From the NCBI GenBank assembly GCA_016748015.1, contig JAAOMT010000543.1:1-64000 (forward strand): a stretch of DNA of 64,000 nucleotides. Reading direction: 5' to 3'. Below, piece by piece: positions 2,540-58,624 of the stretch. The notes beneath the pieces are model-generated. The model ran no database searches, had not been told where the DNA came from, and worked only from the letters and a program-made list of their open reading frames with translations. Every line of letters begins with the position of its first letter. Position 1 is the stretch's first letter. Source of the stretch: Geosiphon pyriformis uo1 (taxonomy: Eukaryota > Fungi > Glomeromycota). A program made the translations under genes and the position numbers.

Positions 2540-5060
2540 GAATAACTCTACTAAATAAAGATGTTATTGCTAATTCTTCTAATTCAAAAGGAAAAATGGC
2601 TGCAAAAGACTTGTTTTCAGTAATAGTTACTAGTGAAATGTTTTTAATAAGTAGTTGGTGATTGGTTTCTAAGTTGTTAGATGGGTTGTTTTTTGAAATA
2701 ACTAAGAGACTTAAATAATTTTAGAAATTCAGGTTTTGGATATATCTATTTTCTGAACTCTATTGATATAATTCTAATGGCTGGTTTGATGAACTGAAAA
2801 TTGGTTAGTATATTATTATTGCCAGTTTTTTATTTTGCCGAATATAAATGATTCTTGGTTTTGGATTTTTGGTTAATGTTAATACAGTAATTTAGAGCAA
2901 TACTTGAATTTATTGGTGTTGATAAATTACTTGTGACTGTGGTTAATATATTACTAATATTGAAGTTTAATATACTGAAGGTAAATATATTAGTTGTTGT
3001 ATTATTAAGGTGTAATAAGATTAATATTGATATTGTTCCTAATTCAAAATATAATTTAGAGTTTAAAACTAGCAATTGAGATTTTAATATTGATTTTCTG
3101 ATTATTAGTTATTAAATTTAGCATAATAATTTGCTTTTAGATAGCCTTTTTTATCACAATAATAACAATTATGTATTTTTTGTTGTCATAATTGATTTGA
3201 CAATAATAAACACAATTGATTTTGGAAACAATTAGAGTTTTTTTAATTGTTATAACATTGTGAAAATTAATAAATTGCTTAGCTGTTAGCTAAGTATCCT
3301 TCTAATTTCTGATTAATAAAGTTACTAAATTGTTTTAACTTAAAATCTAATTTAAATAATCTATTCATTACTAGATTTATGGTTTGGACATAGTTTGGCT
3401 TTAAGTTTGGTTAATTTAAAATCTCTGATATGTGTAACTATATTTTAGAAAATATTTGGGTGTATTAAATATACTTGTTGTAGTAAACTATTATATAATC
3501 CACAAATAAACTAGTTTAAAATCTTTGCTACTATAAAATAGTTAGCTTGAATTGGCTAAATTTAGCATAAATTTTTGTGAAAACATTTTAAGTAAGTAGT
3601 AATTACTTTAATATTATCTTGTTTGATTATAAAACTAGTTAGCAAGCAATTTAAGTTATAATTATTTCTAAAATATCATAGAAATGCAGTTTTGAATGCA
3701 TCAAAATCTTAGAATTTTTTTACAACATTTTAATATTATAAGTTAATAGTCCTAAAAATAGTATGGGATGGCTTGAATTGTTTTGGCATTATCTTATCTA
3801 TTGGTTACAATAGCTTTTTTTATATTGTTTAGTTATGCTTGAACATTGTTCTCTTTGCTGATAAATTTTTTTAATTTGACAATAGGTATATATGCCATTA
3901 GTACATATTGTTGTTGTTAAAATTGTGGTTGTAGTGTGATAATTTGTGCAACTGGTAAATCAATCACAATAACTAGAAGTAAAATTTGAATTGTTTAAGT
4001 TTGGCTAAATTTAAACAATTAAAGTTATAATTTTCAGATTAATTGAGATTAAGTTTTGATTATTATTTCTTTAATCACTGTTTTTTTTTCTTCTAATTTG
4101 GTATCTTTTCAATGACTAATAAATTCGAAATTGGGTTGAAATGGCAGTGATTAAAGTTCTGATGATGTTATTGGTCACAATTTAAATTCTTCAAAAAAAT
4201 TGCCATAAGTTCTTAATAATTTGGCTTTTTCTTAATAATAGTGTTTTTATGGCTGCTGTGAATACAACTGTTAATATTATGTTAATAGTATTTTCAGATA
4301 TATAGTGATATAATAAGTTAATAAGTTAATAAATAAAACAATTTTTGGTTTCTTCTAATTAGATAATTGTATTTTTTTTAATGTTTTTGCTAGAGTTTGT
4401 AATTTTTTTTTGTTTACAAAAGTAATAAAAAATCTCTGTTAAGTATAATGCTTAATTTTTCTGTTTATTTTTGGGCTTAATGATACAAACAAATGATTTG
4501 ATACAAATGTAGTGTTTTGTAGTAGTTTACTATAAAAATTTTTAAGGGTGGCTTCTGAATTTTCTTGGTTTTCCAAGTAAAATTTAATTTTTTTGTTGAT
4601 ATAAAAATTGAAAGCTAATTTTGCTGGCTAATAGTTACTTGTTAGTTTAAAATGAATTTGGTAATATTAAAATAAGAATTTTGTAAATTCTAAATGATTT
4701 TTTCCTATAATTTCTTAGTCTGTCACTTTTCTGAATAATTGATGTTGATGCTGGTTTTCTGTTAAATTATATCTTACAAAGAGTATTAAATATTACAAGT
4801 AATTATTTAAGTATTAGAACAAATAATAAACTCATAACTTGGTACTCAATAGCTGGTAATATTAGTAATTTCTGAAGATTTTGAAGTTTAAAAGTTTTGG
4901 TTGAGTTTTTTATATAATAAACAGAAATTTAATAGATTGTTTTTTTTGTAAATTCTTTTTTTCAACATAATGGCCAGTTTATTTTGGTAGTTGTATTCTT
5001 TTGATAAGCTATTTTTAAATTTCTATTCTTATTTCTGGGTTTTTTATTAGACTATTCTTG
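2540..5060 (-). pseudogene. Retrotransposon gag remnant
   Basis: Minus strand at 3370-3850 gives decayed retrotransposon-gag text: 'QAIPYYF', 'FDAFKTAFL', 'QILN*FICGLYNSLLQQV', 'LKPNYVQTINLVMN'. It has many stops. 4260-5060 is repeated at about 8330-9110. Confidence 0.65.
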
Positions 5061-31619: not shown

Positions 31620-33165
31620 GTGCTCCAGAGAAACCAGTTGTGGGTGTTGGAAAAGAAATATTGCTAATAAAAATGTTTGTTCTAGTTCCTATTATTTTTT
31701 CAATGAAGCGGACAGCTCCCACCCATGCAGCTTCTGTTGACCATGACCTTTCCTAAACACTTTTCACAGGTTTTAAAATCTAAATTTAAAATATTCCCTG
31801 CATCTTAGATAATAAAGTTGGGTACCATTTTGAGATAAAAATCTCATTCATTGTTTAACAATTTCTTGTTCATTCTAATTTTTCAAATATTATGATATAA
31901 AAAAGGGACTCCTATCCACGATAATAATCTGATTCAAAGTAGAATTATCCAATATTCGCCAAGAACTACGCTTTCTTATTAAAGAATTAAATTATTTATT
32001 TAAAAATTAAATAAACTTTAAAGTTCAATAAGTAATTTAGAGTGAACATTTTCCCAAGATTAATTTGATTCACTCACTCTAAATTAATCATACTACTAGA
32101 GATATGTCATTTATTTCTTGAATATAAGCAATAGTCATTATTCTCTTCACTTTACTCAAAAAAAGAATTTTCACCTACAAGATAATACTTACCCCATTTT
32201 TCTTCGTATTGCTCTTGCCATATTGCTTTTCTCGCCTTTTACCACCCCCTCAAGCCCAAAAATCGCCTCAAAAAGCTTAGCTGCGAATTCGCAAGTGCCT
32301 CTTCATTTGAACCAACCTTCGAGTGCTACTTTACAAAATCGAGTCGTTCCAGGTTCCGAAAACCCCAATAATAGGTCAATTACAAGTGGCTGCTGAATCT
32401 CGAGCAACAAATCACTCTCCATATGCTAAATGTCGGCCACAAAAAACTCCTAAATGAAAGAAAAAATTAAATCAATCTTCACCACTTGATATCCTAGCCA
32501 ATTCGAGTTTTGTGAATTTATCTTTACGTCTCATAAATCAGAGAAGCTTGTCGTCAGATTAATATTTGTGGGGATATGGCGGCTTATTAATAAATTTCGT
32601 CACCATCTGATCAGTAACTAATATTAGCAGGTGCTAAACTGAAGCAACCTTATAAGCGCGTGCCCAGATGGACAACGATTCATTCAGAAGAGGACATTTT
32701 TGTTGAAACGTTATAGGCTACAGCTATTTTTTTCTGCAATGGTATTTTGCTTTTGTGACATAACGCAGCGTCTTTTGTTTCATCCGACTATGATATTAAA
32801 GGTAAATCTGGTCAAACCCATCCATTGTTTCAGAGGGTGGTTGGGATACACCTTTGACCAGCAATGAGCGGTTGAGAATTTTCCCAAAGATTGTCGCTTG
32901 TTTCTGCTATTATCCTGGTTTTTGTCTTGCACTTTTTGCTTATCTGATGATCTCCTTTATATTTAGCTACTCACCATTTTTGCATTTTGCAAATGAAGAC
33001 AGTGTTGATGGGGAGAATATCCTGGGAAAGTTTGTCGTTAAAAAAACCCAAGAATTTTGCAGATTCCTGAGCTGACACCGCTGAGAAGTTTGTAGGTTGG
33101 AAATCGAGAAAGAAAGAGCCACTTTTGTCTTCCAAGATCCTCTTTTCGCTCGAGGCTAGAAACAT
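31620..33165 (-). pseudogene. Decayed multi-exon gene of unknown family
   Basis: GC-richer blocks are bounded by splice-like sites (tttag| ... |gtaag). One block reads 'EFFVADI*HMESDLLLEIQQPLVIDLLLGFSEPGTTRFCKVALEGWFK*RGTCEFAAKLFEAIFG' with in-frame stops. Confidence 0.4.
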
Positions 33166-35488
33166 AGGTGCCGAATTAACTTTTCTCTAATATGCACATT
33201 GGACAAATTTTTTTTAGTCGAAAGGATGCGAGAAGAAATTCTTGCACTTGTTCTTTTAGCACAATGGCTTTAATTGCCCAAGTACTCCTATATATATATA
33301 AATTCTTGAGCTAAAATTTTTTTATAGTAATTTCCTCTACTTTTGAACTGTCTCACAAAAGTAAATCGTTTTTTAATGAGTCTAAAATTGATTCCGGAAA
33401 TATTTTATTATCCTATAATAACTACTGATGAGGAGGAAACATTCTTTGACTTCCACCCAAAAAATGAAGTGTCAAAAGCTTTTTCCAAATAAAAAGAGAA
33501 ACATTGATATGATCAAAGTCTCCAATACTTAATACCTAGTCGAGGGCTTGAAATTCGAGTGGGAGAAAATTTTTGCTTTCTTTCAACCAGAGAAGAAGTT
33601 GAACAAAATTATGCACGAATAGAAAAAGAGGAAATTTGGATCAATGTCAAATATCGATATCGTGGCGCAAGATTTTAACACAGAGCACTGACATTGAGCC
33701 GGATAAAACTATTTCATTAAAGATGATTCAATCAATAGGTTTTAAAATTTTTGATGGGAGAACATTTATTCATTCCTAAAATTGTTGACAAATCTAAATA
33801 TTAGAAAATTTTTTTTAAGTGAAGAATAATTTCAATTTCTTGATTGATTAATATTTCTATAAGACAATGAATAGGATTTTTCATATAAATCTGTTTATAA
33901 AATCAAATTATTTTTGAATGCAGATTTTGGGTTTTAAAACACGAAGATTTATCATAAAACTAGCAATAGAGACAAAAGTTTTGCTCAAAAAAATAGTGAT
34001 GTCTTCCGTTGAGGTGAATCCCTGTATTCTTTTGAATTGCATTATAGGCTGAAGGAATGTACAAAAGTACGTTAAAGGCCCTGAATAACAAGGAAATTAT
34101 ATAAATTTAATCATAAAATTCAGAGAATAAAAATTGATTGAAATTTGTTTAGCTATCTGTTTTATATATATATCATGATGGATAAAAGTTTTTTAAATTT
34201 GCGAGTTGACTATATCCCAAAGCAAAACATTTCATCCTTCGAACTAGAAAGAAGAAAAGCGCCGTCGTATGTTAACGTCATTGTAATTATACACGAGCAT
34301 TGACGAATGATGAAAGAATTAAAAAAAAAAAGACCTTTTGAAAATCTAACTTTTTCCATTGAAGTGACTATTATTATGCATTCATAAATTTTCAGAATTT
34401 TTCAGAATTTTAACGCAGCAGAAAAATTTTGAACACATAATCTATTTTTGAAATAATACAACTTTAGACACTTGAAAAATTTCAGATATTTATTATAATA
34501 ATCTTTCCTCTTATTCAAATTCACTTTTCAATTTTGAATTTTGAATTTTTAATGACTTCTTTATAGTTTTTGAAGGGAGAGTTTTCGTTTCAAAAAACTG
34601 AACCAACTTCTGGCAAGTTTGATATTTGAATTACATCAAATTTTGAAAGCTTAGATTTCTTGAAACTGAAATAACTTTACTGACACCCTTCATTTCATTA
34701 AAGCAAAGATAGTTAGTAAATTCTTTCAAGTTACCATTTTCACCATGCAATAATTTGAAACACATGATTATCAAGGCTCTATTGATGTGTGATGTTTGGA
34801 ATATCCCGAGTTTGAAAAACGTTTTTTGTTTCAGGTTGGAATTAAAAACTTTGGTGCCCTTGAAACTAAAAAAAAGTTCCATTTGCAAAATATCTAATCA
34901 AAATAATTGCGTAATAATTTACATGAAAAATAGCTCAATTTTCTAAGCTCCTCATCGCGTGGCTATTAGTTCCATCAAAATGTTTAGGTTTAAAAAGTTG
35001 AGCTTAGCCCATAGCGCCCAAACGTTATCATGAATTGGAACATTATTTTAGCCTGGGGGCGAACATAATATGATTTCCTTTGAAAATCCATAATAAAAGC
35101 GATCTATTTTGCCCTAATGATACAGCATATCCATCCAACAATGGTTAATATATATCTCCGTGATAAGCAAAGATTTTCTCTCTTTTGGTTTTGATCAAAG
35201 GAGGTTCACAGTAGATGCTACAGCAAACAAGATAGCATATATAATATTAAAATTTTCTTTACTATATTCACTGTTCTGTTGACAGAATTTTTGATTTAGC
35301 AGAACGGGTGTCTGCGATTGAAAACTAAATTTTTTCTAAACTTGAAAATACCTTATAAATTGTTGGTGCACTATTTTCACAACGAGAAGAGGCATACTAA
35401 AAACGTCAAAAAATCGAGATTCATCAAGTTTTTTTAATTTTGAAAAAATACGAAACGATTTTACCTTCACAAGGTCAAAAATAAACCA

Positions 35489-40051: not shown

Positions 40052-42328
40052 TTATATTAAATTCTGATATGCATAAGGTTGGTTTACTTGGGAAATTTGC
40101 GAGGAATAAATTCCTGACGCAAATTCTGGTGCAATTTCAAATAAATGATTGTCTTGCATCAATTCAACAACCTGTATATGTTCTAATTGTGACTGTATTT
40201 GAAAGATTTGTTGTGGTGACAGTTGGTGTTGCTGTTCGGAATTGAGACTGTTTGTTGTGACCATTTCAATATCTGAAATCGATTGCAATGTTCCCGTCCA
40301 TGGATAATACTCGATTGGAGTTGTAGGTGTTGGTGGCAAATCCGAATTCACATGATTTAGTTGATTAATAGCTGAGTTGTTATAAGATGGTGGTAACCAT
40401 TGATGAGTCAGAGTTGAGTCAAGTGAAGAAGTAATAGGAATATTTTCCAAGTTAACCTGAGAGTTTTCATTAATGGGTAATGTCTGGCCAAAGGAGGTTT
40501 CAAATTCAAGTGTTTCTAAAGCAGGGGTTAACAGGTTGTGAGATGATTCAGTTAAAATTGAAAGTTGTGGTTTTATATCTCGCATATAGTTTAGCATAGA
40601 ATTTTCTTGAATTAAAGATTGGCCATTAACATCGTGCTCAAAACTACAACCACCCAAGATCTGATTCATGATAAAATTTTCAAGCATTGGAGATTGTGAT
40701 TGTAATGTAGGAGAGGTGTTAACATTGGAAGAATTTGAAAGTAAATGAAAGTTTTGTTGTTGTTGTTGTTCAAGTGGAGAGGGTAAAGGCGAAGCATATG
40801 TAGAATATTGTTCTGGGGGAAAAGAGTTTAAATGTTGTTGAGATTGAGTGGAAGAAGAAGAAGAAGAAGAAGAAGAAGAAAGTTGATCAAAGGAGAATTC
40901 AGGGCAATGGTCAATCTGGCTATTGTACAATTGGTTATTTACATTTGAATTTATCCAAAGGATGGGTAAGTTTATATTGGAAGGTGAATTGATTTTCTCA
41001 GGAACAATGGCATTATTTGTGTCTGATGCAACTTCGAGTTGCGTCACATTGAAGTTTTCGGAATTATTGGAAAAATTTGAGCAAACGATTGGTTGTTGTG
41101 AATGGTGGATTTGATTTTTGGTCTCTAATGGATTTATATCAAAAACCGTAAAAGCTGATTCCATTGATGCTTGTTGACGATGCTCATATGGAACTTGAGA
41201 TTTGTGACCTTTGGCAATTTTTGATCTGGACTTTGACTTTGACTTTGAATCGGCTGAAAATTGTTCTAAAGAACAATTTGTCTCACCATTGGCATTAACT
41301 TTGGTTTTGCTATCTCTTTTTTGTGGCTTATACTTGTAGAACGGATGCATCCTTTTATGTTCAACAAGAGCGACATCGGCTTCTCGTTGATAACGTAATT
41401 TTACGTGTTCCGGTTCTTCTCGCCACATTTCTGCCACAGTTTTCGATGGATGCCGAACATCGGGCCTTGCACGCATATTATTTGACTTTAATTGTGCCAA
41501 TTCCCTGGACTTTGTTCGGTGATAAATGATGAAAGCATTGGGCGGCCTTGGGACTTTAGAGTCATTAGGTTTAGATAGTGTAGAGGTAGTGGAAAGCTTT
41601 CGTTTTTTCGTAGTCTCTTTTTGTGAGAGAAACTTTTTGAAAGAAAGATGAAAAAAAATTAAAAATTAAATTTAATACCAAAAGATAGATAATTATTTCA
41701 TGAAAGTGATATATATATATATATATATTTATATGAAATTATTTTGAATAATTACCTGATGATAAGCTTCGGAAGGCCAAGAAAATTGACCCTTCCCTAA
41801 ATCAACAATCGCCATTTTATTATTGTCTTCAGTGTGTTTTCTTTTTTCTGAAGAATAAGAGAAAGAATTCTGAAGTTCAGCTTTTCTATCACCAAGAGGA
41901 ATCGTTGATAAAGAAGAAGAAAAAGAAGAAGAAGAACAAGAAGAAGGAGAACAAGAAGAAGAAGAAGAAGAAGAAGAAGAAGAAGAAGAAGAAGAAGAAG
42001 AAGAAGGGGAGGTAGGATATTGAGGATGATGATACGTCAATGAAGATGGGATTGATTTGGATAAGGAGTTTTTGTTAATGATTTGTTCCTTTATTATAGA
42101 GGGTTTGATTGAAAAAGAAGAGTTTGGTATATCACTTTCTATTAAAGCTTTGGTTAATACTTTGTGAGGAATGATTTGAGGTCGATGATGATGATTATGT
42201 TGTTGTTGTTGTTGTTGTTGTTTTTGATTATGATAATGTTGATGTTGGTTTATGGTAGGATTGAGAGTTTTCAAAAGAATTTGGGAAGATAAAAATGAAT
42301 TTAATGACCCAGTGGGTTTAGTTTCCAT
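40052..42328 (-). CDS. MATA/SOX-TCF-type HMG-box transcription factor, 2 exons, about 717 aa
   Basis: Exons 42328-41756 and 41632-40052 join in phase 0. HMG box: KVPRPPNAFIIYHRTKSREL...SKTVAEMWREEPEHVKLRYQREADVALVEHKRMHPFYKYKPQKR. Flanked by poly-Q/H/S and N/Q/S/P-rich low-complexity regions. Confidence 0.92.
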
Positions 42329-53510: not shown

Positions 53511-54603
53511 CTGAATTAAGTATATTAGTTTTAAGATTATTTTAAATAATTATATTTTGTTTTTAAGAAACTACTCATTTATAATATTATTTTATTTAAA
53601 CATTTATAAAATACTTTAAAAAATTTATTTTTATGTGATTGGGGATTTTTTCTAAAAAGTTATCATTAGATGAAAAAATTTGTTGCTAAATATTGCAATA
53701 AAAAAATATATTAATCATATTATTTAGTGATAAATGTATTTTATATTAAAAATCATTCCCCCCATTTTAATACAAAAATATGTTTGCTGAAAAGATAAAT
53801 CGGAGTTTTTCGGAATTATATTATCCTTTGGTAATGAAACATCATTCAACTGATTTTGAATGCTACAACATAAAAATCATGGAGTTCTCGAAAATATTAT
53901 ATAAAAAAAAATATATATATCACATTATTTATTTACCTTTTTTCGGTCTTTGCCGACTTCTAAAATAAAAGCTTTGTCCCACTCTTTATACTTTTTTGAC
54001 CAGTGATTCTTTGTAAACAATATTAGGTTTCAAGATAATCAATTCTATTTATGTGATCAATGCTATTTATGTGATCAAGTCATATATATTAGTAAGATAT
54101 TAAACTAATGAAAATCGCTTAATAAGAATCCAATTGGGTTTAATGATATGGTCTTTTTCTTATTTGGACAGTATACTTGAATTTTTTGAAAACTTCATTT
54201 TTTTAACAAGATTTTATCTATCATTGTTAAAGAAATGTGAGTACTACTTGAGACTTTTGGGATTCTTGATTTGTAAAGAAAAGTCCAATTTGAAGTTTAG
54301 TAGCATATTTTTTTTTTGACTAAAATATCATTGCCACGGAACTTTCAGTTAAGAGTGTAAATATTCAATTAACAAAATAAAACCCTTCAAGTTTTCGTCT
54401 TTTTTAATTGCACCCTATACCAACGTCTAGATAAATTTAATGCTTAACACAAAGCAACTGCCTAATTTGTTGGATAAAATAAAAAATTAGCTTTATACGA
54501 GTGAAATATTGATACTGGAATTAAAGGTTTTAAAACAGTCGTAAATGTCGCTGAAAATTTTCCAAACTAATTCATATTAATAAAAATACTACAGGTTCAA
54601 AAA

Positions 54604-55142
54604 TGTGACAATAAATCCTCTTTTTTTGCCATATCATAGGCAAATAGAAAACTTGTTATCTCATCAGACAGTTTAAATTGTTGGTTTAAGCAAGGAAAAG
54701 TCATCGCTAAGAGATTTCCAACTGGAATTCGTCTCTACGATATCTTTTCCCTTTTTCCAAAACTAAAACAGCCATATTAACACCGCTGTCATCCCTACCT
54801 CTACTGACCCTAAGCAAAAAGAGGGACAAAACTAGCTACTCCTTTCTCGATTACAAAATGCTCAGTAATATCAGCTCAAGTGTCAAATTCAAACGACCGA
54901 GACTTAAAAATCTTATTGAAATGGGCAAGTTACGGATGGCCTTCGAATTTGTAGTTATTTATCGTGACCGTCTTTGCCGCTTGTCTTCAACCTCCTCCAA
55001 ATACATCTTCTCTACCCATTCTACAAAATTTGTGGGTTCTTCCGACGAGCACAAATTTTACCAGTTTATTCTTACCATTGATGCTGTCTCCATCTGCAAA
55101 ACTCAAGGATGGTGAACAGCTAAGTATAAAAGAAAGTACTAA
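54604..55142 (+). pseudogene. tnpA: IS607-family TnpA serine-recombinase transposase remnant (N-terminal MerR-like HTH plus catalytic domain)
   Basis: 54640-54745 reads 'ANRKLVISSDSLNCWFKQGKVIAKRFPTGIRLYDI' (~A..LGVS..TLR.W...GKI...RTPGG.R.Y). Then 'STDPKQKE' (~VSS.KQK.DL), 'DYKMLSNISSSVKFKRPRLKNLIE' (~DIGSG.NFKRPGL..L), 'EFVVIYRDRLCRL' (~VVV.YRDRL.RF) and 'AVSICKTQGW*TAKYK' (~VF..RLYG.RS). Confidence 0.8.
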
Positions 55143-56009
55143 ACGAGCAAAAAGTGCAAGACAGACACCAAAATAATCACAGCAACGGCCCCCTTGTTGC
55201 TGATCAAGGTAAACCTCAACCACTCTAAGAATGGGTTTGATGTGATTTGCTTTGAATACTATATTGAAGTGGAACAAAAGATGTTTGTCCAGTGTTAACA
55301 CCTCGGACCAAAATTATCAGATATAATACACAGCAACAAGATCCCTCTTTCTTTCCAGTCACATTACAGTATTATGATTCATCTTCAGTATCTTTTATCA
55401 TTATCGTAGAATTGTTTTTATGTCTTGTCTATTCACAATTTCTCAATGCATACCTATCCCACATTGACACAAGGTAAAAATTTTAGTTTCTTAACCTATG
55501 ACTACATTTCTTTGGTTTTTTTATATAATAAAGATAAACGCGCGTTATGGACTTTCTACTTCGAAACTAAGCACAGAAACAATAAGCGACCCTATCGACA
55601 CATAGTTACATTTAAAAAGAGACGTCTATAAGATACAAATATAAGTCTGCAATACCCAAGCTCATCCATGCAGTTTCTATTGATCCTGGCGTTTGCACAT
55701 CCTTCACCTCCAAAAACGGACTTTGATGATATCAGACCAATTGTTACCTGTATAAGTATAGATGATCTCACATTGAAAAAAGTCATACTGGGCTGTCCGT
55801 AAATCATAAGAAAAAAGTGGGGCCCAGCGACTCGACAAAGCAATTTTGCACATATGACAAAAGAAGTTTGCAGAGTGAAATGTATCAGAGGGTACGAAGT
55901 GTATAATTGCCGAAATTGCGGGCAGAGATGAAAATGACGCTCGAGAATCCTTCTCCGGGTATTGCTTGATGGAGTCATGATCCTTTTGTGGAGTCCTACC
56001 TACTATTGA
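55143..56009 (+). pseudogene. tnpB: TnpB/Fanzor2-like RNA-guided nuclease remnant, with internal deletions
   Basis: Colinear fragments: 'FYFETKHRNNKRPYRHIVTF' (55550-55615), RuvC-I 'HAVSIDPGVCTSFT' (55667-55708), helix 'RLDKAILHI*QK' (from 55828), 'IRGYEVYNCRNCG' (55884-55922), RuvC-III 'RDENDAR' (from 55924) plus 'ILLRVLLDG' (from 55947). The RuvC-II region is missing. Confidence 0.78.
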
Positions 56010-56276
56010 TGTGTTACAATTCATCAGAATTCACTTATTAATCAATTGTTATTTGCATTTATTCGATTTAAATTTTTCCTAAGCTAAATACAAATAAATG
56101 GTTATTAGTAAAAACTTAAGAGTGGATAAATTTCAAAAGATGCGAGTTTTAAACCGTCTTGTGTTAAAAACTATTGATAGTTTTACAAATCATTGGAAGA
56201 AAATTCTCCTACATAATTCTCAAACTATTGAGGCAAGAAAATGTAATCTACTTATTAATCTCAGCTGTATAAAATA

Positions 56277-58624
56277 TTAATTTAGCATCGACCTATCATA
56301 AAAAGATTGAAGAGCATCCATCATCTTTTGTTTTATAATAACTTTATCTATTTTTCCCTCATTGCTCTTTCGCGAAGGGTAGATTTTTTCTCTAATTTCC
56401 TTTTTATTTTTGTCAATGGAGTGATTTTCAGAATTTTGATTTGTATTAGACTGACCATTTTGTTCACTACCAATCGTATAATTGCATTTAAGAAATTTTC
56501 CCTTGGAATTTTGAGTTGTAGTAGGACTTTTTGCAGGAAATCTATATTTTCGGAATATTTCTTCATCGACTATTTTTTTATCTTTCCTTCTATCTTCTCC
56601 ATTATCAGATTCGTCGTCCAAATCATGACCGATGGGACTCGTGATGGAAACCTTGGAGCTTGTTTTACGATAGAAATCTTCAATCGCCTCAAATGACGCC
56701 TGAAAGATTGATTCGGTAATATTTGGATTCAAGATATCTAATTTTCCCTTTGAATTTTGAGTTATAGTAGGGCTTTTTGCAGGGAATCTATATTTTCGGA
56801 ATATTTCTTTATCGACTATTTTTTTATCTTTCCTTTCATCTTCTCTATTATCAGATTCGTCGTCCAAATCATGATCTATGGGACTCGTGATGGACAGCTT
56901 GGAGTTTGTTTTATGATAGAAATCTTTAATCGCTTCAAAAGACGCATGAATGGTTTTTTGGGTAATATTTGGATTTAAGATATCTGATTTTTGTTTTTTA
57001 CGGATAATTTTTGGTTTCCAGTTAGACGATACCTCTTCTTCAGTATCATGCACTTCAGTATTACTATTTATAATATCTTGATTGTTCAAAAACTGTAAAC
57101 CACTCGACTGTAGACTCTCACTGTTGTGACCATCAAAAGTTTGGTCTCCTGATCTCATTTCAATTGTTAGCAATTTAGGCTCGGAATTTAAAATTTCACT
57201 CTTTTCATTCTGGAGGTCTTCATTCGATTTACAGTAGATGTTTTCAATAGCTGGAAAATGTGCCTTCCTTAAAGCTTTTAGAAACTCTTCAACATTAAGA
57301 TTTTGATTGAGAATCTCTTTAGCCATTTCTTCGGTCAAAATATCTTTAAATGTTTCATTGGAGTGAAAGTTATTGATCGCATGAAGGCATATATCACGAA
57401 TCGATTTAGTAAAATCCTCAAGGGTCGAACAAAGATTCGAATAATTATCCCGATATAAAGATCCATTGAATTCTGAGCTTGATTTGGCCATGTAACTTTG
57501 CAAATTTTGTTTCATCCTCTCACTTAACCTCACGAGTGCCTCTAACAAAGGTTCGAACACTAATGTTGCAAATTCTTGTGTAATTTTTTGTTTATAACCT
57601 CTACTGAAAATCGTGATTCAATCTCTTTTTTAACCTTTACCTTAGCAGAAAAGAACAAGGAATTAAGGCAATTGAATTATTAAATGTTTAGCTAATGAAA
57701 TTTCAAACTTTTTTACCCTCTCATCAGCAGAGTACTCTAAAACTCTATTATATTCTGTGAAATATAAGTCAGCTATTTCTTCTACTGATAGGAAAACGTT
57801 TTGTTTGTGAATTAAGGCTTGAATTTTGAGTTTTGTCGCGTAGTCATCAAAGTGGTCTATTTTTTCAGCTTCTTTTGCTGCGTCCTTGTCAGGGAAAAAC
57901 ATCCTTTTACCCTAATTTATTCCTTTAATGTATCTGTTGATAAATATTTTTGAGTTACAAAAGATAATTACAATATGGAGAAAGTGCTAAAATGAACTAT
58001 TGCAGGAATAAGGAAAATTAAAAAGAAGGAATGAGGCTTCAATGATGAAATTTATTAAATTAGCTGGCTCCATCAATTGATTTTTAACAGAGTCATCCTT
58101 GTTCAATATGTCGATAAGATTAATTTATGATAATAATTTATCTATGATAGTTTTATGAGGCTTCAGGCCGATATGATCATGCTAACCCAAATTATTATAC
58201 TTTCTTTTGTTCCTCTTGACCCATTGCTTCGTTCCCATTATGCTTTGCTTGTTCATCATGAGGAGAATCATATCGATTTTGGTCTGCCACTTTTCGATGA
58301 TTGTCTAGGGACTTTCGATCATCCTCATAACCCTCCCATTCTCTTAGAAGCTGTCCTATAATTTCTGTGATTAATAATTTAAGATTTTATCTTTTTTAAA
58401 AATTTTGTTTATTCAAATAAAGTATCCATGTTTCCTAATTAATAATTGCCTTTTGAATCGCTGTCACCTGGAGGATGTCCAATATTCTTTCTATCTTGCC
58501 GATGTTCTTTCACATTAGGCAAATCAAATGGACTAGCATTACTTTGACGGGGAATACCATGACATATAATAGGTGAATTTGGCTTCGAACCTGAAGAAGC
58601 TTTGGTTATAAAGAATGAAGGCAT
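56277..58624 (-). CDS. Lineage-specific hypothetical protein with internal 82-aa tandem duplication; 5' structure uncertain, possibly frameshifted
   Basis: 427-aa ORF at 56277-57560 plus upstream coding-like blocks 57663-57902, about 58170-58357 and 58439-58624. Continuity at 57580-57680 needs frame changes. Confidence 0.5.
56493..56984 (-). repeat. 246-bp coding tandem repeat x2
   Basis: 'DILNPNIT...ASFEAI.DFY.KT.SK.SITSPI.HDLDDESDN.ED.RKDKKIVD.EIFRKYRFPAKSPT.TQNSKGK' occurs twice. Confidence 0.9.

Follow-up and report, generated by a model that had tools for sequence, protein, structure and literature searches.

Does the genome of the glomeromycotan fungus Geosiphon pyriformis hold the remains of a transposon that joined a serine recombinase to an RNA-guided nuclease of the Fanzor type? 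The question is raised by an interval within a 64,000-nucleotide stretch of isolate uo1 (contig JAAOMT010000543.1 of assembly GCA_016748015.1, positions 1 to 64,000, forward strand; from now on referred to as the window). A preliminary description, made by reading the letters without database searches, had placed a decayed IS607 element there, with a TnpA recombinase followed by a Fanzor2/TnpB nuclease, at positions 54604-56060. Our analysis indicates with high confidence that positions 54549-56027 of the plus strand are a fossil copy of a eukaryotic IS607-type DNA transposon residing in the nuclear genome of Geosiphon, a class named IS607EU in a 2026 review (PMC13565253). The element first described is thus real, but its bounds lie further to the left at one end and less far to the right at the other.

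Identification of a fossil IS607-type element

The interval 54604-56060 has a GC content of 37%, compared with 25.3% for the whole window. Three-frame translation of its plus strand locates all motifs named in the preliminary description, in the order given there, scattered over three frames and interrupted by stop codons; the resemblance is much stronger than chance would give. Several searches identify the upstream part as a TnpA of the IS607 family, as had been claimed. The open piece at 54711-55112, which contains the KRPRL...YRDRLCR motif, matches the NCBIfam model NF033518 (transpos_IS607) at profile positions 91-152 with an E-value of 1.9e-6. Using tblastn, the TnpA protein of an intact element from an environmental assembly (L085, see below) aligns to the window with residues 10-43 at 54646-54744 (44% identity, E 6.6e-4) and with residues 97-199 at 54843-55136 (E 2.5e-16). 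Further, a TnpA fragment of another genomic copy matches window positions 54843-55157 (E 1.9e-8) in a search of the fungus's own genome. The combination of a MerR-type helix-turn-helix (HTH) with a serine recombinase, which marks the IS607 family, is therefore found here, with only a relic of it retained in the window; the same HTH motif is seen in giant-virus TnpAs.

The downstream nuclease part was detected at the DNA level with nhmmer, using a family profile of 2095 positions built from 24 other aligned genomic copies, from which the window copy was left out and which served for detection only. Three matches were obtained: window 54775-55284 corresponds to profile positions 138-736 (E 1.3e-67), 55288-55886 to 937-1637 (E 7.9e-73) and 55879-56030 to 1881-2081 (E 9.4e-25). 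These three matches show that the window copy follows the family order, with profile positions 737-936 and 1638-1880 missing. A TnpB-type nuclease lies downstream of tnpA on the same strand in the window, in the 24 sister copies and in two intact environmental elements (L084 and L085). Judged by this homology, the order in the fossil element reads as a TnpA serine recombinase remnant followed by a Fanzor2 remnant. The full family element is about 2.1 kb long and carries tnpA and Fanzor2 on one strand between a conserved left end (LE) and a conserved right end (RE).

A Logan contig (7945 nt, word depth 80) from a sequencing run of the same sample as the assembly spans positions 53520-57400 with zero differences to the window. 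Consequently, both flank junctions stand and a chimeric join is ruled out; the check on junction-spanning reads suggested in the preliminary description came out in favor of a genuine insertion.

Organization of the window copy

The features of the fossil copy are as follows.

54549..54639, plus strand: LE, non-coding; a CG junction at 54549-54550, then conserved subterminal sequence (LE motif alignment across copies)
54640..54777, plus strand: remnant of the N-terminal MerR-type HTH of TnpA, in its own reading frame (tblastn)
54778..54842, plus strand: degenerate stretch, tentatively the expected catalytic-serine segment of TnpA; third frame, stop-interrupted, read by eye against the TnpA of L085
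54843..55136, plus strand: catalytic and C-terminal part of the TnpA serine recombinase (KFKRPRLKNL ... VVIYRDRLCR ...), with a stop at its end (NF033518, tblastn)
55143..55284, plus strand: start of the Fanzor2 core (HTH_OrfB-like, LLLIKVNLN... / FALNTILKW), with a frameshift and stops (nhmmer match 54775-55284)
55285..55287, plus strand: internal deletion 1, where the REC region lacks about 200 bp (profile 737-936), seen as a gap between nhmmer matches
55288..55886, plus strand: Fanzor2 REC/WED remnant, RuvC-I, then a helical segment; several stops and frameshifts (nhmmer, E 7.9e-73)
55884..55886, plus strand: site of internal deletion 2; about 243 bp missing (profile 1638-1880), from the profile coordinates of the adjacent nhmmer matches
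55887..55985, plus strand: Fanzor2 C-terminus with second CxxC, RuvC-III and tail (nhmmer match 55879-56030, E 9.4e-25)
55986..56027, plus strand: RE; terminal conserved block ending in ..TTACAATTCATCAG, the family form being ..ACAATCCATC followed by CG

BLASTN of positions 54450-54700 against the LEs of other copies finds those of L004 (E 1.3e-8), L011 (8e-5) and L032 (0.004), with alignments beginning at 54546-54551; about 25 bp present in other copies have been lost internally from the window LE. Within the TnpA part, the stretch 54778-54842 gives no significant high-scoring segment pair (HSP) with the TnpA of L085 and lies inside the nhmmer family match 54775-55284. The +1 frame of the TnpA part at about 54889-54924 reads SNDRDLKILLKW, a relic of the Fanzor2 N-terminal extension that overlaps tnpA. 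At the start of the nuclease core, residues 214-238 of P0018, an intact environmental relative, give a weak collinear tblastn HSP at 55231-55302. The window contributes no bases over the columns of deletion 1 in the alignment with the 24 copies, and its row is likewise empty over alignment columns 3150-3400, corresponding to deletion 2. Between the two deletions, RuvC-I with its DPG motif reads VSIDPGVCTSFT at 55673-55708, with SIDPGVCTSFT at 55676-55708, and the RLDKAILHI motif of the helical segment that follows lies at 55828-55854. The intact relatives P0023 and P0018 give collinear tblastn HSPs at 55545-55610 and 55664-55708. Three nuclease features have gone with deletion 2: the RuvC-II bridge, the first CxxC of the zinc ribbon and the shifted catalytic glutamate, which other copies retain as NE.YTSKTC. 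In the remaining C-terminus, YNCRNCG (second CxxC) lies at 55902-55922, RDENDAR (RuvC-III) at 55924-55944 and the ILLRVLLDG tail at 55947-55973, and an 11-nt loss splits the motifs over two frames. The DNA matches of this C-terminal stretch fall on matches to PF07282 (the TnpB/Cas12f zinc ribbon) in other copies.

The nuclease belongs to Fanzor2

Fanzor and pro-Fanzor nucleases are defined by a rearranged active site with a shifted glutamate (10.1101/2023.08.09.552727; PMC13565253). The Geosiphon family reads (Q/S)NE[AV]YTSKTC, placing a glutamate six residues before the first zinc-finger cysteine; this feature is present in the family and absent from the window copy, where the segment is deleted. 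Better-preserved copies show SIDPG at RuvC-I, CxxC...CxxC and DRDENGA. The D-P-G motif is found in the window (SIDPGV, 55676-55693) as well as in sister copies and relatives, while the four-cysteine zinc ribbon and the R-D motif of RuvC-III are complete in the family, with only the second CxxC and RDENDAR retained in the window. The best match in the PDB is the mimivirus TnpB-like protein L79, also known as ApmFz2 (9b0l), with an E-value of 3.9e-11 for a fossil fragment and 2.1e-19 for P0023; Cas12f/TnpB structures follow at about 8e-7 for the fossil fragment and about 1e-10 for P0023. A phylogenetic tree of the nuclease domain also places the Geosiphon family with Fanzor2-type sequences. Motifs, best structural match and partner gene all assign the family nuclease to Fanzor2 in an IS607 arrangement, which is the type first proposed for it.

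A family of relics in the Geosiphon genome

The whole assembly (128.3 Mb, 792 contigs) was searched for further copies, and the best candidates of each search were scored. Used as a DNA query, the 1.46 kb of 54604-56060 find 50 diverged matches of 64-90% identity across the assembly. PF07282 gives at least 68 matches over its cut-off, a TnpA-like open fragment of another copy finds at least 102 places (window 54843-55157 among them) and a RuvC-I fragment at least 156. With the intact relative P0023 as query, 367 first-look candidates were obtained, and 89 of the 92 that were scored reach E-values of 1e-10 or lower. At 24 non-redundant loci the TnpA part, the N-terminal Fanzor part and the C-terminal part follow each other in order within 1.3-1.8 kb. 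By these homology searches the family amounts to hundreds of relics in Geosiphon, and the copies are spread over many large contigs.

Some relics have entered GenBank. The open reading frame of L026 (contig C701) is identical to KAG9307454.1 ('hypothetical protein G9A89_017284 [Geosiphon pyriformis]'), and a fragment of another sister copy is 97% identical to G9A89_018258. The PF07282 scores of fragments L026 and L032 are 52 and 45 bits. The copies fall into two or more subfamilies, with the L026 and L021 types being about 46% identical in the C-terminal domain. The second subfamily comprises L021, L023 and L024 (G000 contigs C701, C404 and C588), gives the genome's highest PF07282 scores and has the environmental proteins P0010 and P0021 as its nearest relatives outside the genome.

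A second, truncated relic of the same family lies on the minus strand of the window at 32481-33207 and consists of a tnpA remnant and the start of the Fanzor2 core. It is matched by nhmmer over profile positions 154-921 (E 3.5e-68 and 7e-19), with an additional weak piece at 1247-1372, and is backed by tblastn HSPs with the TnpA of L085 and with P0018.

Decay of the copies

The window copy has no function. Its tnpA is spread over three frames with stops, including stops inside conserved blocks, and its nuclease is missing about 200 bp of the REC region as well as about 243 bp that carry the catalytic glutamate and half of the zinc finger. Median pairwise identity among the copies is 0.648 (range 0.52-0.82), and the window copy reaches at best 0.675 (median 0.615) to the 24 others. 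In the genome, all P0023 matches longer than about 140 residues contain stops, among the best 92 of 367 candidates that were scored. The frameshifts, stops, deletions and hundreds of relics bear out the earlier view of a dead copy of a once-active family.

The direction of substitutions was polarized at positions where three environmental relatives agree. At these positions the fossils show C>T at 24% and G>A at 18%, compared with 7% for T>C and 10% for A>G. GC content is 44-51% in the environmental relatives, whereas the fossils have a median of 41% and the window copy stands at 38%. The relics have drifted towards the AT-rich composition of their host. No CpG-specific decay is present among these substitutions (0.219 compared with 0.203).

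Element ends and proposed life cycle

In the copy alignment, conservation rises and falls sharply at both ends of the element. On the left side, about 100 nt of non-coding sequence are common to the copies, beginning directly after a CG and holding two direct copies of a TTGCTTA.TAATGC.TATCA-like motif. On the right side, 19 copies as well as intact L085 terminate in the family form given above, with its ..ATCCATC terminus, followed by CG and then by unrelated flanks; the window RE ends at 56027. Across a few dozen decayed junctions, LE and RE boundaries are sharp, a CG is found at each junction and the flanks are unrelated; apart from the shared CG, the bases next to the element show no evident duplication.

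Reasoning from characterized relatives, a living element would have been excised and inserted by TnpA in double-stranded form at a short target (CG) without target-site duplication. Fanzor2 would have been guided by an omega-RNA reading out of the element's 3' end into the adjoining DNA, and its cuts at empty sites would have led to the element being restored there by copying. The Fanzor2 reading frame would have started inside tnpA, in the +1 frame. In ApmFz2, the omega-RNA scaffold occupies the last 205 nt or so of the element (PMC11832414). By analogy, the omega-RNA of the Geosiphon family is expected to cover the 3' end of the nuclease gene together with the RE, which would represent the 3' part of the scaffold, and the guide of the window copy would derive from the flank after 56027.

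Relatives and origin of the family

Thirteen unaltered C-terminal fragments were combined into a profile (A2), which was run against 1.84 billion representative proteins and returned 9121 matches at E-values of 0.001 or lower, seven of them at 1e-30 or lower. At the top stand the fragments annotated in Geosiphon itself, one partial protein from Funneliformis geosporum, and unnamed proteins from metagenomes and Logan; lower down, the heterolobosean Pharyngomonas kirbyi contributes complete transcripts. The Funneliformis geosporum sequence (P0009, CAI2201829.1, on a 631-nt contig) is a partial, internally deleted Fanzor2 about 75% identical to the Geosiphon copies. In this other glomeromycotan assembly it points to a family that is shared or was transferred, unless the single-spore assembly is contaminated.

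Two environmental assemblies contain intact elements. L085 (ENA ERZ27397459, 3812 nt) encodes a 248-aa TnpA (Resolvase 72 bits, MerR) and a Fanzor2 of at least 463 aa, has the same right end as the Geosiphon family (..AATCCATCCG) and is accompanied by an ankyrin-repeat neighbor. In L084 (Logan SRR15128685, 2032 nt) the TnpA and Fanzor2 frames are both open. The expectation that intact copies may exist is thus borne out in environmental assemblies and not among the scored Geosiphon copies. The neighboring open reading frame of L085 has no match in viral contigs, and P0023 as a single-protein query has none in genome contigs or viral contigs. Fifteen IMG/VR giant-virus contigs of up to 340 kb carry relatives that are 34-48% identical, mostly with tnpA adjacent. 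In GTDB, hundreds of pro-Fanzor-type relatives are found in cyanobacteria, Chloroflexota, large sulfur bacteria, Synergistales, Uabimicrobium, Parachlamydia and Methanothrix, with about 30% identity to P0023 over the full length.

A maximum-likelihood tree of the nuclease domain was calculated from 69 rows and 254 columns, including 30 bacterial sequences (Nostocales among them) and 12 IMG/VR giant-virus sequences; the fragments are short, making deep branches weak. The main Geosiphon subfamily forms a starred clade with three environmental proteins (98*), which then joins P0018 and P0023 (97*). The L021-type subfamily joins the same larger group, from which bacterial and IMG/VR viral sequences are absent. 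The Geosiphon copies are widely separated from Brasilonema, Scytonema and Anabaenopsis. A giant virus, another fungus or a protist may have been the donor of the family.

One further environmental protein, P0153 (288 aa, JGI metagenome contig), carries the TnpA HTH motif and the Fanzor2 RuvC-I region directly side by side in a single open frame and has the appearance of a member of the same family shortened by an internal deletion.

Alternative explanations

Geosiphon houses Nostoc, the prokaryotic sister group of Fanzor2 is mostly cyanobacterial (Yoon et al., 10.1101/2023.08.09.552727; cyanobacterial neighbors were also found in the atlas) and the GC content of the element (37%) lies above that of the window (25%), all of which would suit a bacterial IS607 recently transferred, or misassembled, from this endosymbiont or another associated bacterium. 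We consider such an origin very unlikely. A recent bacterial arrival is at odds with hundreds of diverged, AT-decayed copies on many large contigs and with a read-derived contig that spans both junctions into eukaryotic AT-rich flanks. Moreover, the Geosiphon clade includes none of the 30 bacterial sequences and the bacterial relatives are only about 30% identical to P0023. The preliminary description had named an endosymbiont as a possible source; as the family shows no affinity to Nostocales on the tree, acquisition from Nostoc is not supported. Giant viruses (Nucleocytoviricota) offer another route, as IS607-Fanzor2 elements are common in them, 15 IMG/VR contigs hold relatives and the best solved relative is mimiviral. 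The window copy could then be part of an integrated viral fragment or, in a weaker form, the family could have been first delivered by such a virus. Taken together this is improbable, if less so than a bacterial origin. The window copy and its sisters resemble each other precisely up to LE and RE and are flanked there by unrelated AT-rich host DNA, and these sharp element ends refute the integrated-fragment version; no viral genes flank the window copy and no sampled viral sequence falls into the Geosiphon/environmental clade. A virus may still have served as the vector of the family. Finally, many fungal Fanzor genes have introns (PMC10530073) and GenBank annotates sister-copy fragments as hypothetical proteins, so one might ask whether introns or assembly errors merely mimic frameshifts in what is in fact a live or domesticated gene. 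That possibility is close to negligible, as the two deletions together cost the copy about 440 bp of conserved coding sequence and with it catalytic residues, stops fall inside conserved blocks, substitutions are AT-biased and unconstrained, and the depth-80 read contig with zero differences makes sequencing error unlikely.

It should be noted that several results weigh against a fossil IS607EU element or limit how far this reading can be taken. Pfam finds no match on eight stop-free pieces of the window, because each piece is short and decayed, and the tblastn HSPs of the intact relatives' nucleases are individually weak (E 0.01-1), so that the nuclease half is recognized through its DNA-level homology to better copies. 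The family looks extinct in the Geosiphon genome, with intactness judged on the best candidates of each search. A CG target without target-site duplication fits crossover by a serine recombinase at a dinucleotide, as inferred from a few dozen decayed junctions. For the expected omega-RNA, RNAalifold predicts a single 5-bp hairpin across 14 right ends without genuine covariation. The intact relative's right end is predicted to be no more stable than shuffled versions of it (z -0.35), and an Rfam search yields no family, only a chance match to PsrR1 (E 0.31).

Overlap of the nuclease frame with tnpA

The Fanzor2 frame extends upstream into tnpA well beyond Geosiphon. We examined the tnpA stretches of L084 (40-640), L085 (878-1624), L069-L081 and L087-L166. 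Of 26 bacterial and archaeal pro-Fanzor IS607 loci with a TnpA match, 24 have a nuclease frame that runs open through 300-640 nt of tnpA, as do nine of ten giant-virus loci and both intact relatives; the frame concerned is +1 in every case. Within the tnpA stretch, 0-5 stops occur in the +1 frame (0-3 except for two Uabimicrobium loci) compared with 3-19 in the +2 frame. A +1 frame peptide, ..PYW..LWLPT..SWFST.., is found from bacteria to eukaryotes (jackhmmer E 1e-38 to 1e-52) and sits upstream of the start of the NCBIfam TnpB model. Frame-wise peptide identity is 0.31 for +1 and 0.27 for +2, which does not discriminate between the frames; with +1 identity barely above +2, the case for dual coding rests on stop depletion and not on peptide conservation.

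The structured N-terminal domain (NTD) of ApmFz2 has been described as unique (PMC11832414), and partial overlap of the two IS607 open reading frames has already been noted (PMC9956272). The conserved N-terminal extension is probably the NTD of ApmFz2; a PDB search with the N-terminal extension of P0018 gave no match. We tentatively suggest, as a possibility that we rate below its opposite, that the +1 frame of tnpA encodes the structured N-terminal domain of Fanzor2, and that this domain is older than eukaryotes. If the +1 frame is translated, transposase and nuclease would be locked together by about 0.5 kb of dual coding, and the Geosiphon clade would also represent a eukaryotic lineage with live members still present in the environment (L084, L085).

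Comparison with known systems

Among the closest described counterparts is ISvMimi_1, an IS607EU element of Acanthamoeba polyphaga mimivirus, in which tnpA (MerR HTH and serine recombinase) likewise lies upstream of Fanzor2 on one strand. Its nuclease ApmFz2 (L79) resembles the Geosiphon family in having a DPG RuvC-I, a glutamate just before the zinc finger, a DRDxNGA motif and an N-terminal extension before the TnpB core; however, the two are only about 30-45% identical in the nuclease domain. Viruses carry 1-3 copies of ISvMimi_1-type elements each, whereas Geosiphon has hundreds in a fungal nucleus, all examined ones being dead. In addition, the terminal sequences and the apparent CG target are specific to the Geosiphon clade and differ from mimivirus IS607EU; published Fanzor2 target-adjacent motifs are G-rich (PMC13565253). 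The prokaryotic pro-Fanzor IS607 elements of cyanobacteria, Chloroflexota and large sulfur bacteria (Yoon et al. 2023) share the gene order, the rearranged active site and the long +1 overlap, but are about 30% identical, form separate clades in the tree and reside in bacterial chromosomes, where many are intact.

Among fungi, Fanzor2 in IS607-type elements was described in 2013, the fungal cases then being single copies in Saccharomycetes (Bao and Jurka 2013, PMC3627910). Like Geosiphon, Ashbya, Eremothecium, wine strains of S. cerevisiae and Torulaspora carry Fanzor2 in a fungal genome; unlike it, they have one family per genome at very low copy number, compared with hundreds of TnpA-bearing relics of at least two subfamilies. 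The Fanzor1 protein SpuFz1 of Spizellomyces punctatus is also a eukaryotic TnpB homolog and RNA-guided nuclease in a fungus, but Fanzor1 rides DDE, Helitron or Crypton transposons and lacks a serine recombinase, while the Geosiphon family matches Fanzor2/IS607.

IS607EU elements are described as low-copy in eukaryotic genomes and, to our knowledge, represent the only eukaryotic transposon type with a serine recombinase. Eukaryotic IS607 elements have been called sporadic (10.1101/2023.08.09.552727). The literature we searched contains nothing linking Geosiphon with Fanzor or 'mycorrhizal' with IS607, and a 2025 survey of transposons in mycorrhizal fungi mentions neither Fanzor nor IS607. The kind of element is therefore already known, and the Geosiphon host lineage and the copy number are not previously reported. 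Hundreds of relics in a glomeromycotan fungus imply that IS607EU elements can burst on a large scale in a fungal nucleus. The defined ends, the apparent CG target and two intact environmental relatives provide material for testing Fanzor2 and TnpA of the fungal clade.

Neighboring open frames

A 427-aa open frame on the minus strand (56277-57560) has its start about 250 bp from the element's right end and contains two near-identical internal repeats of about 80 aa (..DILNPNIT...FEAI.DFY.KT.SK.SITSPI.HDLDDESDN..). Further away, a 474-aa open frame on the minus strand (40052-41476), without an exact match in the protein collection, begins with a sequence that by eye resembles an HMG-box protein, a kind of protein that is expanded in mycorrhizal fungi.

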